Positions 3,801 through 29,748 of a DNA stretch of 29,762 bases are shown here, in pieces. The translations under genes and the position numbers were made by a program. Source of the stretch: Macrostomum lignano (Eukaryota); contig NIVC01004092.1 in NCBI GenBank assembly GCA_002269645.1, positions 1 to 29,762 on the forward strand. The letters are read 5' to 3'. Positions within the stretch are counted from its first letter, which is position 1; every line of letters begins with the position of its first letter. The notes beneath the pieces were generated by a model. It was not told where the DNA came from. It did no database searches and worked only from the letters and a program-made list of their open reading frames with translations.

Positions 3801-4365
3801 TGAGCGTGTTAACGAGTTCATAAATGCAGAATGAGTCACTTGAGTCAGTCAGCTGTCAATTCATGAGTAAATTCAAGCCAGATCTCATGAGTCATAGTTG
3901 ATGAGGCCGATTCATGATGCGGCGTTTTCTCCTGAGATCAGACATGGCTAAACCGCTCGTATAAATAATTTTACCAAGCATCCTTCAGTATTTATTATTC
4001 GACCAACGAACGTACACAACTAACAATATAATCTCATAATCCTTCTTGGGTGTACAGGCACGCATCAAACGGTTGAGTATACTATATACTAGCCCAGAAG
4101 GCACGATCCGAAATGCCACTCATGTGGAGGAGAGATATGATGGTGCAGGTTCCGGGGCTGCAGCATCTCTGCTGTTGGCTTGATTAAGTTACACTTCACT
4201 GTGGAAACTCCTGCGTACAAAAATAGCTCTGAATTCGTCAGATAATGAATCCAAATGACATTTTGATAGATGCAAGCATGAATTAATGTTGCACTGGCGA
4301 AAGTTGTAAATGGCTTGAAACCCATCCTATCCCATCTCATCTCTATCATCTCCATGAGGTGGAAG

Positions 4366-4807
4366 GCGCCAGCACCAGAGGCGCCAGCACCAGAGGCGCC
4401 AGCACCAGAGGCGCCAGCACCAGAGGCGCCAGCACCAGAGGCGCCAGCACCAGAGGCGCCAGCACCAGAGGCGCCAGCACCAGAGGCGCCAGCACCAGAG
4501 GCGCCAGCACCAGAGGCGCCAGCACCAGAGGCGCCAGCACCAGAGGCGCCAGCACCAGAGGCGCCAGCACCAGAGGCGCCAGCACCAGAGGCGCCAGCAC
4601 CAGAGGCGCCAGCACCAGAGGCGCCAGCACCAGAGGCGCCAGCACCAGAGGCGCCAGCACCAGAGGCGCCAGCACCAGAGGCGCCAGCACCAGAGGCGCC
4701 AGCACCAGAGGCGCCAGCACCAGAGGCGCCAGCACCAGAGGCGCCAGCACCAGAGGCGCCAGCACCAGAGGCGCCAGCACCAGAGGCGCCAGCACCAGAG
4801 GCGCCAG
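4366..4807. repeat. Perfect 15-bp tandem array (GCGCCAGCACCAGAG)x29.5
   Basis: 29 identical units at 4366-4800 plus a partial gcgccag. The unit has no stop codon in any frame, which explains the five overlapping ORFs listed in the track. Confidence 0.98.
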
Positions 4808-6742: not shown

Positions 6743-16748
<10,006 letters not shown>

Positions 16749-18962: not shown

Positions 18963-19288
18963 CAAAATAAATTAAGACTGCAAAATAAATTAAGACTGCA
19001 AAATAAATTAAGACTGCAAAATAAATTAAGACTGCAAAATAAATTAAGACTGCAAAATAAATTAAGACTGCAAAATAAATTAAGACTGCAAAATAAATTA
19101 AGACTGCAAAATAAATTAAGACTGCAAAATAAATTAAGACTGCAAAATAAATTAAGACTGCAAAATAAATTAAGACTGCAAAATAAATTAAGACTGCAAA
19201 ATAAATTAAGACTGCAAAATAAATTAAGACTGCAAAATAAATTAAGGTCTTAATCTTAATTGATTTTGCAGTCTTAATTTATTTTGCA
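18963..19288. repeat. 18-bp tandem array (CAAAATAAATTAAGACTG)x~16, followed by an inverted copy of about 2 units
   Basis: Forward array at 18963-19246. The segment 19255-19288 is the reverse complement of 19213-19246 with 1 mismatch. Confidence 0.95.
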
Positions 19289-22200
19289 CCACGGTGCAGA
19301 TAAATGCCGCTACCTCCTCGTGGTGAGAGTGGAGAGCCGCGCTTAACTGCTGCGGCGGCCAAATGCGGCAGGACCAAGCGAGGGCAGCGGAGCGCGCGTC
19401 GGCGAGTTGAACGCCGTCGCGAGCGAAACTGGCGAGGTCGGCAACGTGGCGCCGCCCGCCGAGCTGCTGCTGCGCTGGCCCAATTGGATCTTCCGGGTGG
19501 CGCCGGGGACCATGAGGCTCACCAGCATCGAGCCCCAGCCGTACCAGAGGCACGCTTCGGGTCGGGACGCTGAACTGCCGCACTCTCAAGGCCACATGGC
19601 GGAGAGGGCTGCTGGCGAGGCTAGCGCTCGACCTCAGCTGTGATGTCATCGCACTACAGGAGGTGTCTATCAGAGCCGACCCCGGACTTCACTGTGAGGA
19701 CCTGGGCGCCGGTTGGACACTCTGGTACACCTCAGCGGATGAGCGAGGCCGTGGAGGAGTTGGAGCGCTGATCGGACCGAGGCTGCAGCAGAGCTGTCGC
19801 TGCATCTCCCTGTCTTCTCGGCTGCTTCGGGTCGACGTCCGGCTTCGCGGCCGGAACACCCGCCTGTTCTGCGCGTATGCGCCGCCTGCTACCCGCTCCG
19901 ATGAGGCTCAGGCCTTCTTCGAGCAACTCTCGGTGCGGGTGGAGGAGATGGCGCAACGTGACACAGTGGTCATTCTCGGAGACCTGAACGCAGTTCTGCG
20001 TAGGTCCGAGCGATCGCTGTTTGTGACAGCGCGCGAGAACGGCAACACCGGAGCGCTAGAGGACTTCCTGGAGAGACAGGACATGGTGTCGGCCAACACC
20101 AGATTCCGCAAGTCACCGGGCAGGCTCGCGACCTTCGTGGGCTGCAAGCGGAGGCGGCGGAACGCGCGCGGCCGGAACGCTACGCGGAGGCTGGCACAGC
20201 TCGACCACGTGCTTGTGCGCTTTCGTGAGCGCCGCCGCGTCACCAACTGCCACACCATTACGCCGCTGGCTCTGCGGTCCGACCATCGGCTGCTCATCTG
20301 CGACCTTCGGCTTCGGGACCCGCTCTACCGTCCGCCAAAGCGGCCACCGCGGCGCTACTACCGCGCGCTCAGGGACGCCGAGACGCGACGTCGCTTTGCC
20401 GGTGCCTTTGTCACTGCGCTGGGCGACAAGCGTGGAGGAGCCGAGTACGCGGAGGTGAGCGCTGCAGTTCGAGCCGCTGCGGAGCAAGCAGTCCCGCTGA
20501 TGCGACCGGCCCAGCGCGGGCAGCCGGTCTGGCAGGACGACCCCGCGATCGACGAAGCGAGGGAAGATCTGGAGAGGCTCCGACTGAGTGGGCGGCCAAC
20601 TCGCGAGGCGGAGGAGGCTCTGGCGGCTGTCTACCTGCAGCGGCAGCAGTCCGCTGTCGATGACGCCATCCAAGCCGTCTCTGCCGCAGGGCCCGATGCC
20701 AGAGGGCGCTTGGCCTGGTCCGCCATCAACACTCTGACGGGGCGAAAGCGGCGCATCGCGCTCAACCTGGCAGGCGACACTCCGGATGAGCGCAGGAACG
20801 AGCTGCGCGAGTTCTTCGCCGCCATTGTCAACGCGCCGCCCCCTCCGCTTCCAGAAAATCTGAGGCTGCCGCCGGAGACGCCGTTGCCGGCGGAGGAGAG
20901 CTTCAATGTTGCCCCAGTCAGCACAGCCGACGTTGTGAAGTTCGCTCGGCAGTCGCCGGGCGGCAAAGCGCTTGGTCCGGACGAGGTGCCCACCGAGGCG
21001 CTGCGGATCCACTGCGTGGCCACTGAGGTCGCCAGAGTGATGAACCGCGTGCTTTTCGGTGAGGTGGCGCCAAACGAATGGACCACGGCGCACATCGTCG
21101 CCATTCCAAAGAAGCCGGGCACCACCAAGCTCGAGGAGCATCGAGGCATCTGCCTACAGTCCTGCGCCGCGAAGCTGTTCAACCGCATGCTGCTATCGCG
21201 GTTACAGCCTGTGCTGGACCCGTACCTGCGACCTGAGCAGAACGGATTCCGGCCCCATCGCGGCACAGTGACGCAGATCCTGGCTCTTCGACGAGTCATC
21301 GAGGAGGCGCGCATCCGCCAGTTGACCCTGATCCTGATCTTCGTCGATTTCAGGAAGGCTTTCGACTCGGTCGTGAGGGACGCGCTCCCAGAGGTGCTCC
21401 GTGCGTACAACGTGCCAGAGCTGCTGATTTCTGCTGTCATGGCGCTGTACCACGGCACGACGGCTGCTGTCTCAACACCGGACGGCCTATCGGATTTCTT
21501 CGAGACATCCTCCGGGGTGCTCCAGGGAGATACGCTAGCGCCGTTCCTATTTATTCTGGTGCTTGACTGGGTGCTACGGACTGCTCTGCCTTCCAACGAC
21601 GACGGCTTCCTGCTGCGGCGACGCGTGGGTCGACGCCAACCGGAGAGACGGCTCAGCGTGCTTGGCTACGCCGATGACCTCGCCCTGCTGTCCTCGACCG
21701 TCGAGGGCGCCCAACGACAGCTGGATAGGCTGGTTGCCGTTGCGGCGAGCGTCGGCCTGGTGGTCAACACGCAGAAGACCGTCGTGCTATGCGTGCCGGA
21801 CGACACCGAGGCTGCAATCTTCTGCCGAGGCGCTGACGGACAGGCGAGTGAGCTTCCAAGATGTCAGCAGTTCGTCTACCTCGGCGGTCTGGTTCCCGAC
21901 GTCCGCGAGGATCTGCGGCGTCGCCGAGGACTTGCTTGGGCTGCCTTTCGTTCTATAAGGTCAGTCCTGCAGTCCGAGGCCCTACCGGACCGCCAGAGGG
22001 CGGCGCTGTTCCAGGCGGTGATCGAGACCGTCCTGTTATACAACGCCGAGACCTGGACGCTGACAGACTCGCTCGAGGCTCAAGTCGACGCGGCGCACGC
22101 TGGCCTGCTGCGCGCCGCCTTCAAGATCGGCAACGAGCGAGTCACCAACACGGCGCTCTATCATCGCGCCGGCCTGGCCCGTCCTAGCGATCTGCTGCGC

Positions 22201-22463
22201 CGTCGGCGACTCCAGCTGGCAGGCCACGTCATCCGCGCCGAGGCCTACTGTCCGGAGCCGGTGCAGGAGGTGCTGCTACTTACGTTGCAGGCACCCTACC
22301 GGCGGGGACAGGCGAAGTCTCGGCGCTACGTCGACTGTCTGCTGGCTGACGCCGGCGCCCCGGACTCTGCCGGCGGTGCGGCTTTTGTTCGCGCCCAAGC
22401 TTTGAAGCGCGCCATCTGACGCTGCTTTTGTGAACTGGCAGCGTACTCTGTTGTTGCTGTTGT
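19289..22463 (+). mobile_element. Near-intact RTE/RTEX-like non-LTR retrotransposon
   Basis: GC-rich block with a single APE-EN + RT frame, a short 3' UTR and a (TGT)n-type tail (ctgttgttgctgttgtt). Candidate TSD tatagattaca at 18954-18964 and 22464-22474. Confidence 0.93.
19516..22419 (+). CDS. APE endonuclease-reverse transcriptase polyprotein
   Basis: The frame is open from 19516, upstream of the track start at 19663. EN motifs: GTLNCRTL, DVIALQE, GGVG, CAYAP, ILGDLNA, LDHVL, SDH. RT motifs: PKK, EQNGFRP, FVDFRKAFDSV, GVLQGDTLAPFLF, YADD, FVYLG. C-terminal RRRLQLAGHVIR. Confidence 0.95.
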   Translation, partial: GSPASSPSRTRGTLRVGTLNCRTLKATWRRGLLARLALDLSCDVIALQEVSIRADPGLHCEDLGAGWTLWYTSADERGRGGVGALIGPRLQQSCRCISLSSRLLRVDVRLRGRNTRLFCAYAPPATRSDEAQAFFEQLSVRVEEMAQRDTVVILGDLNAVLRRSERSLFVTARENGNTGALEDFLERQDMVSANTRFRKSPGRLATFVGCKRRRRNARGRNATRRLAQLDHVLVRFRERRRVTNCHTITPLALRSDHRLLICDLRLRDPLYRPPKRPPRRYYRALRDAETRRRFAGAFVTALGDKRGGAEYAEVSAAVRAAAEQAVPLMRPAQRGQPVWQDDPAIDEAREDLERLRLSGRPTREAEEALAAVYLQRQQSAVDDAIQAVSAAGPDARGRLAWSAINTLTGRKRRIALNLAGDTPDERRNELREFFAAIVNAPPPPLPENLRLPPETPLPAEESFNVAPVSTADVVKFARQSPGGKALGPDEVPTEALRIHCVATEVARVMNRVLFGEVAPNEWTTAHIVAIPKKPGTTKLEEHRGICLQSCAAKLFNRMLLSRLQPVLDPYLRPEQNGFRPHRGTVTQILALRRVIEEARIRQLTLILIFVDFRKAFDSVVRDALPEVLRAYNVPELLISAVMALYHGTTAAVSTPDGLSDFFETSSGVLQGDTLAPFLFILVLDWVLRTALPSNDDGFLLRRRVGRRQPERRLSVLGYADDLALLSSTVEGAQRQLDRLVAVAASVGLVVNTQKTVVLCVPDDTEAAIFCRGADGQASELPRCQQFVYLGGLVPDVREDLRRRRGLAWAAFRSIRSVLQSEALPDRQRAALFQAVIETVLLYNAETWTLTDSLEAQVDAAHAGLLRAAFKIGNERVTNTALYHRAGLARPSDLLRRRRLQLAGHVIRAEAYCPEPVQEVLLLTLQAPYRRGQAKSRRYVDCLLADAGAPDSAGGAAFVRAQALKRAI

Positions 22464-25098: not shown

Positions 25099-25380
<282 letters not shown>

Positions 25381-26572: not shown

Positions 26573-27271
26573 AAACCTATTCCTTTGAATCCAGCCCAGA
26601 TCTCATTTTCACTGAATTGCTTAATACACTTGCATGCTTAATATCTATTTGAAATTGCAATCATCAGGAATTAGAAATAAACCTCCGTGTTGAGGGTTAA
26701 AGATCGAGAGAAACATATCGAACCTTCGGCTTATTTAATTGATTAGAAGCATATACGATTGGTACCATCATCGTCTAATAGAGAGACGGAAGAATAAGAG
26801 ACAACTGAAACATTTGACCTGGTAGAGGTTGGAACTTAGGACCGTGCAGTGTTACTCCTTTACAAAAGAAGCAATGTTTTCAAGCTCTGCCCCGGGCAAA
26901 TTGCAGTGCCCAGGGCTCACGGCAGTCCTTGGGTTTGTGAAAGCGTCTTAGACGACACGTGCTTTAAGAGCCCAAACTTAAGGGTTTGGAGAATTATTTG
27001 CAATAAAAGATGCAGGTTGAGTAGCCAGCTAGTTTAATTTTGAGCCATTTTGAGCCACAAGTGAGCCGTGTGCGGTTCCCATCTTGTTAGACTGGCACGT
27101 GCAGTATCTTCATCAAGTAGCTGCATTGTCCAGCCTCTATGGCAAGCAGTGAGAGATGAAGAGATGCATGGAGCAAAAACTAAGGTGAGCTTGGGCAAGG
27201 CAGCACGCAGCCTGTGCCACGCAAAGCATTGCATTGAAAACGTGCACCCACAGCGCCCTGGCACGTTTTAG

Positions 27272-27321
27272 AGCTGCTTTTAAAAGCAGCTGACCCGAAG
27301 CAGCGCCTCTCTGTCTCAACT
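27272..27321 (+). promoter_or_regulatory. Candidate core promoter of the peptide gene: TATA-like TTTAAAA inside a perfect 20-bp palindrome, with an Inr-like TCAACT downstream
   Basis: agctgcttttaaaagcagct at 27272-27291 and tcaact at 27316-27321, 52-100 bp upstream of the ATG. Confidence 0.4.
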
Positions 27322-27372
27322 AGGAAAGTTTAAAATTTATTCAAGCCTTTCAAAACCAAACACAGCTGAACC

Positions 27373-27591
27373 ATGAAGATGCAACTTGGCATCGCACTGC
27401 TGCTGACCCTGTTCCTCGTGTCCCAGCTGGCAGCCAGCAACCAGTGGGATCAGGTGGAAGAGCCCGACTCGCTTGACGACATCGCCGGCGAAAGTCTTGA
27501 CGAGCCGCTGGAAGCTGACGACGACTACGATGAAGAAGTTCAACCTGTTGCCAAGTGGCGCCGCCGCCGATTAAGCTACGGCAAGAAGTGA
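27373..27591 (+). CDS. Secreted peptide precursor, 72 aa (signal peptide, acidic propeptide, cationic C-terminus ending in GKK)
   Basis: Hydrophobic LGIALLLTLFLVSQLAAS; residues 23-60 have 16 D/E and no K/R; the C-terminus is KWRRRRLSYGKK. It is a GC3-rich island in AT-rich flanks, with ATTAAA at 27788. Confidence 0.85.
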   Translation: MKMQLGIALLLTLFLVSQLAASNQWDQVEEPDSLDDIAGESLDEPLEADDDYDEEVQPVAKWRRRRLSYGKK

Positions 27592-27953
27592 AAGCAAAGT
27601 GAAGCAGACATCAAAGTGTTTTTAATCAAACTTTGTGAAACACTCTTATGCTACTGAAAACTGTTTTTTATTCAAGCAAACACCCTACAGACTACAGTGT
27701 TGCTAAAGTGTCCAAAGTTTTGTCATTTTTAGAGCAAAAAGCCCCACAAAATCAAGGTGTGCCAGTGTTGTCTTGAGCATGGCACCTATTAAACTGAATC
27801 TTTAAATATATTAGTTTTTTACTAATTGGTTGTGTGAGCAGACGTAGGCGATCAACAAACGTTCTTATCTTTATGTCTTTATTATAGCTATAGAAAGTTT
27901 AGATAGCAGTTTAAGTTCGTCCATTGATTAGTAAAAGTATAGAATGTGAAAAG

Positions 27954-29199: not shown

Positions 29200-29748
29200 G
29201 ACCTTGGTTGGGTCGGACGTCCGCCTCTCGGCTGCGGCAGCAAAGCTCAGCACAGCAGGGACACGCAGAGGTCGGCGCAGCGCGCAACGTCGCACTGAGT
29301 GGCGGCGCGAGCGCAACCGGCGAGGGCGACTCCGTGGCGCGGCCAGGCGCCTGTTGTCCCCAGTCCCTGCAACTTCATCTATGGATCCACTGGGGACCAC
29401 GAGGCCAACCTTCATTTGGCCCAGCTGTACCAGGTGGCCGCCTCAGACTCGGCACGATGAACTGCGAACTCTGAAGGCCCCCTGGCGTCGCACCATCCTT
29501 GTCCAGCTGGCCACGACCTACAGCTGGACCTCGTCCCGCTGCAGGAGATTTCTATCGTGGCTGAGCCGGGGCTCCACTCTGAGGACCTCGGAGCCGGCTG
29601 GAGCTCCTGTAAACGTCGGCAGACGACCGCGGCCGGGCGGTGTCGCGTACATGATCGGACCGCGCCTCCAGCAGAGCGTGCACTGCACCTCTCTGTCCCC
29701 GCGACTGCTGCGGTCGACCTGCGACTGCGCGCCCGCTGCATCAGGCTG
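29200..29748 (+). mobile_element. 5' part of a diverged, frameshifted relative of the 19289-22463 retrotransposon
   Basis: RLSAAAAK...RRERNRRGRLRGAARR leader, then GRLRLGTMNC, RTLKAPWRR, LQEISIVAEPGLHSEDLGAGW and IGPRLQQS, spread over shifting frames and collinear with 19340-19870. Confidence 0.88.

Follow-up and report, generated by a model that had tools for sequence, protein, structure and literature searches.

What does a short open reading frame (ORF) near the end of a repeat-rich flatworm contig encode, and which part of its product has selection held constant? The ORF occupies positions 27373-27591 (+) of contig NIVC01004092.1 in assembly GCA_002269645.1 (Mlig_3_7) of Macrostomum lignano, a neopolyploid free-living flatworm. 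The whole contig, 29,762 nucleotides (nt) long, was analysed and is called the window below. The ORF translates without interruption into MKMQLGIALLLTLFLVSQLAASNQWDQVEEPDSLDDIAGESLDEPLEADDDYDEEVQPVAKWRRRRLSYGKK, followed by a stop. An earlier sequence-only reading saw in it a secreted small peptide precursor whose acidic pro-region masks a cationic, probably amidated peptide, KWRRRRLSY. The secreted precursor is supported and the masked cationic peptide is not; the gene models, already present in GenBank as hypothetical proteins, are best filed as an uncharacterised, lineage-restricted, prohormone-type small secreted precursor.

Is the ORF a gene at all? Its length is no evidence here, because the window holds 65 ORFs of at least 70 amino acids (aa), mostly within repeats. 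The gene is confirmed as real by its intact copies, by purifying selection between two subfamilies, by its base composition and by a deposited transcript-derived model. Seven copies of subfamily 1 (S1), spread over five contigs, and three copies of subfamily 2 (S2) all keep an intact ORF that stops at one and the same place, and the GC content of third codon positions (GC3) is 0.70 in the coding sequence (CDS) versus 0.40-0.47 in the flanks. The encoded protein is a deposited NCBI/UniRef entry named "hypothetical protein". The deposited annotation of the assembly was built from RNA sequencing (RNA-seq) data and de novo transcriptome assemblies only, and was filtered by expression; because its gene models derive from such data alone, a transcript is implied. 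M1 is the first possible start, since an in-frame TGA lies immediately upstream, and because the stop position is conserved in S1 and S2, the ORF is not the beginning of a longer protein. The sequence-only reading had made its precursor depend on a transcript, a signal peptide and an ORF that does not run on into a longer protein: transcript-derived models exist, the N-terminus is signal-peptide-like by a heuristic call, and the ORF ends at the same position in both subfamilies.

The translation also agrees with the layout described in that reading, namely a signal peptide, an acidic stretch and KWRRRRLSY-GKK-stop (Table 1). The signal peptide was assigned by heuristics (hydrophobic core and the (-3,-1) rule), not by SignalP. 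It carries K2 and a 12-residue hydrophobic core, LGIALLLTLFLV, with a mean Kyte-Doolittle value of 2.92, and the (-3,-1) rule offers two cleavage candidates, AAS/NQW (after residue 22) and LAA/SNQ (after residue 21). AlphaFold predicts residues 3-22 as the sole helix and the remainder as low-confidence coil. Acidic residues number 16 against 7 basic ones, and the net charge is about -9. Tyr52 lies in the context DDDYDEE, which is favourable for sulfation and makes it a candidate site; the context reads DKEYDEE on two other S1 contigs (L004 and L005), and the Tyr is absent from S2.

The gene family and its pattern of constraint

A scan of all fetched loci recovered seven S1 copies on five colinear contigs. 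A protein identical to that of the window is encoded on two further contigs, L001 and L002, and its tail, KWRRRRLSY-GKK, is thus that of the window, L001-A and L002-A. Both of these contigs also carry a tandem copy, B, 5.4 kb downstream of A, with the tail KGQRRRYSY-GKK (Mlig029420g1). The tail reads KWRRRRYSS-GKK on L004 (Mlig015496g1) and KWGRRRRYSS-GKK on L005 (Mlig015496g2). Identity to the window contig is about 98% for L001 and L002 and about 90% for L004 and L005; all five S1 contigs represent a single locus in allelic or homeologous form. Short of the position of the B-copy, the contig of the window ends inside a retroelement. On L005, which has a single gene, an 89-nt fragment (14137-14219) some 4 kb farther downstream is 89% identical to window positions 27000-27088, the region upstream of the gene, and may be a relic of a lost B-copy.

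The second subfamily, Mlig003877 g1/g3, is found on three M. lignano contigs and is 40% identical to S1. Its layout matches that of S1: MKLHLLLAIVAVAVAAVAVTG ERQFDEDVEQPDDFESALDDIAGDSLEEPLESDEDDISQVAR-VA/LG-RRR-TFN-KKK. Precursors of the family are 72-74 residues long. Searched exhaustively with phmmer, 1.84 billion representative proteins yielded the protein's own cluster and Mlig003877 only (E = 6.7e-4, at a threshold of E <= 1e-3), and no relatives outside M. lignano were found by a word-index protein search, by this phmmer search or by a profile search built on the two subfamilies. Pfam has no family for the window protein and, for the protein P0005, gave only sub-threshold matches over the signal peptide, and a search of the PDB gave no relative, with one match at chance level (E 1.5). 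The phmmer, profile, Pfam and PDB searches therefore uphold the earlier statement that the protein belongs to no named family. The family thus consists of small secreted peptides, disordered and Cys-free, with a restricted taxonomic range.

Where in the precursor does the constraint lie? Invariant between S1 and S2 are the signal-peptide character, Q24, D26, VE..PD, V59-A60, a basic residue at position 61, R64-R65-R66 and the terminal K-K, and exactly three residues separate RRR from (G/K)KK in both subfamilies. The two also share a block, LDDIAGxSLxEPLExD (residues 34-49), in which 13 of 16 positions are identical and the three changes are conservative. Comparing S1 with S2, the proportions of non-synonymous (pN) and synonymous (pS) differences are 0.22 and 0.72 in the acidic region, 0.11 and 0.56 in the block of residues 34-49, and 0.49 and 0.80 in the tail. 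The acidic region is not a spacer of composition only, because the family's sequence-specific constraint lies there. What the sequence-only reading took for a spacer holds the best-conserved block of the family. For peptide mining this carries a caution: a layout that looks charge-masked can carry constraint on the acidic "spacer".

Close copies differ chiefly in the tail, at the two residues before RRR and in the tripeptide after it. Across the seven S1 copies the signal peptide has 1 variable alignment column of 66, the acidic region 4 of 114 and the tail 9 of 39. Tandem copies A and B disagree at 5 of 36 positions of the tail (4.5 non-synonymous), against 5 of 615 (Fisher p = 8e-5) in a surrounding block made up of codons 1-60, the 400 nt upstream of them and the 41 nt that follow the stop. 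In the A-B tail pN (0.159) exceeds pS (0.065), a comparison based on 36 nt only. The S2 copies show only two amino-acid differences (VA to LG), at P5 and P4 of the RRR site, and the two other differences in their CDS are both synonymous.

Copies A and B (window 26934-27629 and L001 14933-15626) are about 96-99% identical over some 700 nt covering the promoter region and the CDS, and the flanks of this homologous segment are only about 85% identical. The pattern points to gene conversion between the two tandem genes in which the 36-nt tail kept its differences. The tail variation itself may reflect diversifying selection, relaxed constraint or such tail-sparing conversion, all judged on those 36 nt. 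Positive selection on the tail is not established on so short a segment, with flanking gene conversion as an alternative cause of the clustering. Since it is chiefly the tail that varies among close copies, a functional peptide may still derive from it.

Processing of the precursor and its rival functions

The motif common to both subfamilies is [K/R]-x-x(-x)-R-R-R followed by three residues and (G/K)KK. In every S1 and S2 variant RRR is invariant and a basic residue stands at P6, with P5 and P4 forming a variable hot-spot. The furin consensus is R-X-K/R-R, an RR pair fits the dibasic rule of PC1/3 and PC2, and basic residues at P4 and P6 enhance convertase cleavage. Because [K/R]-x-x-R-R-R is conserved across both subfamilies, K61 is better read as P6 of a convertase site than as a mature N-terminus. 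The sequence-only reading had begun its mature peptide at K61, but no cut signal precedes that residue, and enzymes that act at basic sites cut after K or R, never before. Nor does the dipeptidyl-peptidase trimming that it invoked fit: read directly, residues 23-60 contain only Q57-P58 and V59-A60 as suitable dipeptides, and because the pro-region is not made of consecutive X-Pro/X-Ala dipeptides, promelittin-style trimming could not reach K61. Promelittin-like activation is ruled out on this direct reading. A further candidate, a PKA-type R-R-x-S/T site within the tail (RRLS, RRYS or RRRT), was dropped, since this part of the protein would face the lumen or the outside of the cell.

The reading that I favour, at a probability of about 0.5, is a Macrostomum-restricted prohormone-type precursor that is cut after RRR(R) to give an acidic peptide of about 40 residues and LSY-NH2. 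The signal peptide would be removed first, a furin/PC2-type convertase would cut after R66 (R-R-R-R) in the secretory pathway, a carboxypeptidase would trim the exposed basic residues and, in S1, Gly70 would be converted to a C-terminal amide. The acidic product would run for about 40 residues from N23 or S22 to about W62, with a net charge near -15 and a mass of about 4.6 kDa. The tripeptide product would be LSY-NH2 here, YSY-NH2 or YSS-NH2 from the paralogs and TFN, with no amide, from S2 (calculated [M+H]+ 381.213 for LSY-NH2). The masses calculated for the others are 431.193 for YSY-NH2, 355.161 for YSS-NH2 and 381.177 for TFN, against 1319.792 for KWRRRRLSY-NH2 and 1191.697 for WRRRRLSY-NH2. 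A cut at RRRR yielding LSY-amide was no more than the alternative in the sequence-only reading; the comparative data favour this processing event, cleavage being predicted from the consensus. The amidation signal proposed there is kept in S1, all four of whose tails end in GKK, but is missing from S2, which lacks the Gly (TFN-KKK). Processing machinery is present in M. lignano: its nervous system expresses a PC2 homolog that is indispensable for development, and neurons of the FMRFamide-like (GYIRFamide) type occur.

Which of the two products would matter? Because selection has held the acidic block constant across the family, the conserved function would lie with the acidic peptide, or with its role in granule sorting or packaging. 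The short C-terminal peptide, varying between copies, would be a diversifying co-product or a tuner of cleavage. Of the two products of the processing model, the acidic peptide is the more probable bearer of that function. If the model is true, this is a species- or genus-restricted peptide-signalling or secretory family in a flatworm amenable to RNA interference and transgenesis, and a small, tractable case for studying the origin of new secreted peptides and their diversification once tandem and whole-genome duplication has occurred. The immediate importance is modest, a "hypothetical protein" being already in GenBank.

Several points weigh against the processing model. A single tripeptide amide is an unusually small product, two of its three residues vary among paralogs, including the one to be amidated (Y or S), and amidation is not family-wide, as S2 reads N-K-K-K. 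The signal peptide was judged heuristically. Neuropeptide precursors usually conserve the peptide while the spacer drifts, and here the order is reversed; tandem-duplicated, species-restricted genes whose ends vary fit immune, reproductive or glandular effectors better than they fit neuropeptides. Finally, neither the identifiers Mlig029420, Mlig015496 and Mlig003877 nor an expression pattern for them occur in the supplements searched (Brand 2020, Weber 2018, Grudniewska 2018, Wudarski 2017, and the 2025 and 2026 M. lignano differential-expression papers), and a full-text literature search gave no mention of the gene identifiers or of the peptide strings.

The first rival, a possible but clearly less probable one, dispenses with the hormone altogether. 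The protein would be an unprocessed or end-trimmed acidic, disordered gland protein, an anionic component of a secretion (prostate or seminal, adhesive or releasing, rhabdite, mucus), and its basic tail would be an electrostatic handle or packaging signal. A net charge of about -9, the lack of Cys and full disorder past the signal peptide suit such a protein, as do the compact gene with its TATA-like element and intronless CDS, the species-restricted and tandem-duplicated family, and the conservation of the acidic block. Numerous secreted reproductive proteins specific to the lineage are also known from M. lignano. However, furin would be expected to cut an R-R-R-R protein in the trans-Golgi, and the strictly conserved RRR, three residues and (G/K)KK resemble a processing signal. 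The gene identifiers are also missing from the supplements of the seminal-fluid screen and the region-specific RNA-seq, a weak point since these files may be incomplete or may use other identifiers.

A further proposal, somewhat less probable than the gland protein, keeps the convertase cut: the conserved acidic peptide of about 40 residues, centred on LDDIAGxSLxEPLE, would itself be a Macrostomum-specific bioactive peptide once released, acting as hormone, as pheromone or seminal signal, or in host defence as an anionic peptide, and the tripeptide amides would be diversifying co-transmitters. If so, this would be a recently expanding, taxon-restricted prohormone family, with an origin and a receptor open to study in a transgenic flatworm model.

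Could the tail be the product after all, as the sequence-only reading held? KWRRRRLSY-NH2 and its variants would then be an antimicrobial or toxin-like product held inactive by the anionic pro-region. The bipartite anionic/cationic layout with a C-terminal GKK does recall arminin 1a-C, the differences between close copies do concentrate in the tail (A versus B 5/36 against 5/615, p = 8e-5, and both non-synonymous S2 differences), and tandem duplication with lineage restriction resembles the evolution of antimicrobial-peptide families. But no cleavage signal precedes K61, the composition of the pro-region is incompatible with dipeptidyl-peptidase trimming, and the internal RRRR would itself be cleaved. 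The tail has 9-10 residues, against 31 in arminin-C, few of them hydrophobic, and variant B (KGQRRRYSY) has no Trp. With 16 acidic against 7 basic residues the charges are not balanced, so the neutralisation proposed in the sequence-only reading is not supported; S2 lacks the amidation Gly; and neither phmmer nor Pfam gave any similarity to arminins or to any antimicrobial-peptide family. An arminin-like antimicrobial is therefore unlikely, well behind the readings above.

Least probable by far, and already largely refuted, is a chance ORF, a transcript without function or an initial exon of some longer, ordinary protein: the repeat-rich window with its 65 ORFs, a position between retroelement copies and the failure to find homologs outside M. 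lignano would suit it, but an intact ORF with one stop position in ten gene copies (seven S1 and three S2), protein-level purifying selection between S1 and S2, a coding-type GC3 (0.70), a complete CDS deposited from transcript evidence and the in-frame stop just 5' of the ATG all speak against it.

Gene structure and surrounding sequence

Table 1. Positions of the features in the window, with the basis or nature of each
Feature	Position	Strand	Remarks
Complete CDS	27373-27591	+	72 codons + stop, intronless; gene model of the Mlig029420/Mlig015496 cluster
In-frame TGA stop, 6 nt upstream of ATG	27367-27369	+	direct reading
Signal peptide, residues 1-22	27373-27438	+	hydrophobic core, (-3,-1) rule, predicted helix
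Acidic region, residues 23-60	27439-27552	+	16 D/E, no K/R/H, no Cys, predicted disordered
Conserved block L34-D49, LDDIAGESLDEPLEAD	27472-27519	+	most conserved S1/S2 protein segment
K61-W-R-R-R-R66, predicted convertase/furin site P6-P1, cut after R66	27553-27570	+	conserved pattern; cleavage predicted from consensus
L67-S-Y69, predicted C-terminal tripeptide	27571-27579	+	paralogs YSY, YSS; S2 TFN
G70-K-K, putative amidation donor Gly and basic residues for carboxypeptidase removal	27580-27588	+	Gly in all S1; Lys in S2
Perfect 20-nt palindrome, AGCTGCTTTTAAAAGCAGCT	27272-27291		about 90 nt upstream of ATG; direct reading
TATA-like core, TTTTAAAA, within the palindrome	27278-27285		direct reading
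E-box CAGCTG	27287-27292		direct reading
ATTAAA, candidate poly(A) signal	27788-27793	+	about 200 nt after stop
Non-LTR (long terminal repeat) retrotransposon ORF, 918 aa, 63-68% GC	19663-22419	+	RVT_1 E = 7.6e-29; sub-threshold AP-endonuclease match
Dense long micro-/minisatellites	4364-4807, 7170-8105, 8738-9275, 9732-10136, 10446-10830, 14732-15341, 18963-19246, 25190-25379		

Upstream of the gene, I infer a candidate core promoter from the palindrome AGCTGCTTTTAAAAGCAGCT with its TATA-like centre and E-box. The palindrome is invariant in four aligned copies and has no variable position across all seven S1 copies. S2 has a TATTTAT some 30 nt 5' of the point where its deposited CDS, transcript-derived and 5'-partial, begins. 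Within the S1-conserved block upstream of the ATG, a splice donor-like AAG/GTGAGC occurs at 27184/27185 (span 27184-27189), with T in place of G at +3 in L004 and L005. A polypyrimidine-AG acceptor, CTCTGTCTCAACTAG/G (...CAACTAG/G), follows at 27322/27323 (span 27316-27323). The sites at 27185-27322 are a possible intron of the 5' untranslated region (UTR), or the second a possible spliced-leader trans-splice acceptor. Downstream, ATTAAA is tentatively taken as the poly(A) signal; it reads ATTAAG in the B-copy.

A comparison of promoter and UTR motifs between S1 and S2 gave nothing beyond two borderline exact 11-mers, the non-coding regions being otherwise unalignable. One, CAGCGCCTCTC, lies upstream of the ATG (window 27301-27311 and L006 10022-10032), and the other, GTTTTTTATTC, downstream of the stop (window 27663-27673 and L006 10443-10453), both with E of about 0.05. 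They may be conserved UTR elements or may be due to chance.

The rest of the window consists of micro- and minisatellites and a GC-rich non-LTR retrotransposon. The minisatellites include a 15-nt unit repeated 29.6 times (100%), an 18-nt unit repeated 15.8 times (100%) and a 23-nt unit repeated 26.7 times (98%); the microsatellites (TCTG)n, (TAGA)n and (TATC)n form arrays of 100-135 units. These repeats account for most of the long ORFs in the window. Rfam found nothing in it. At 29255-29735, the contig end, lies a divergent copy of the 5' part of the retrotransposon, 69% identical, and because of this copy the assembly probably breaks there. The nearest conventional gene to the locus is a peroxiredoxin gene (AhpC-TSA / 1-cysPrx_C) at L002 16713-19682 (NIVC01003287.1), about 1.7 kb downstream of the B-copy.

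Comparison with known peptide-precursor systems

How does this precursor compare with peptide systems already described? The closest operational definition is that of the secreted peptide prohormone (spp/npp) genes of the flatworm Schmidtea mediterranea (Collins et al., 2010; PMC2953531). As in those genes, there is a signal sequence here, called heuristically and with the helix of residues 3-22 as the sole ordered element; basic sites (RRRR and G-KK) flank a predicted peptide, LSY; and the protein is shorter than 200 aa (72) and dissimilar to genes annotated otherwise. S1 also shares the Gly amidation donor of flatworm prohormones, and the processing enzyme PC2 is present in M. lignano. Unlike the S. 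mediterranea prohormones, to none of which it has sequence similarity, the precursor has one predicted peptide of three residues at its extreme C-terminus, and the spacer is the conserved part.

Hydra arminin 1a has an anionic N-terminal part and a cationic C-terminal part of 31 residues, KPWRF...TVGKK-NH2, with a charge of +13; the sequence-only reading gave its KPW start and its GKK end accurately. The likeness lies in the order of signal peptide, anionic part and cationic C-terminus ending in GKK, and in a lineage-restricted, tandem-duplicated family with variation among paralogs, the arminins being confined to the genus Hydra. The two are nevertheless non-homologous, as phmmer gave no match outside M. 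lignano at E <= 1e-3. The cationic part here is 9-10 residues long rather than 31, with a charge of about +5 or +6 rather than +13; the charges are far from balanced (16 D/E against 7 K/R); the supposed mature peptide contains an RRRR convertase site; and S2 has no Gly.

Promelittin-type precursors are activated by stepwise dipeptidyl-peptidase trimming of an acidic pro-region made of X-Pro/X-Ala dipeptides. An acidic pro-region precedes a basic peptide here too, and Q-P-V-A stands before K61, but the pro-region reads NQ-WD-QV-EE-PD-SL-..., with no run of X-Pro/X-Ala.

Frog-skin preprodermaseptins and conotoxins combine a conserved prepro-region with a hypervariable mature end of 10-40 residues that is clearly the product. 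Close copies of the M. lignano gene look similar, in that the signal peptide and acidic pro-region are near-invariant and the changes fall at the C-terminus, after a basic site. Unlike in those families, however, only three residues follow the conserved cleavage site, and the acidic block is kept at the protein level although synonymous sites are near saturation. Such conservation points to a sequence-specific role of the acidic block itself.

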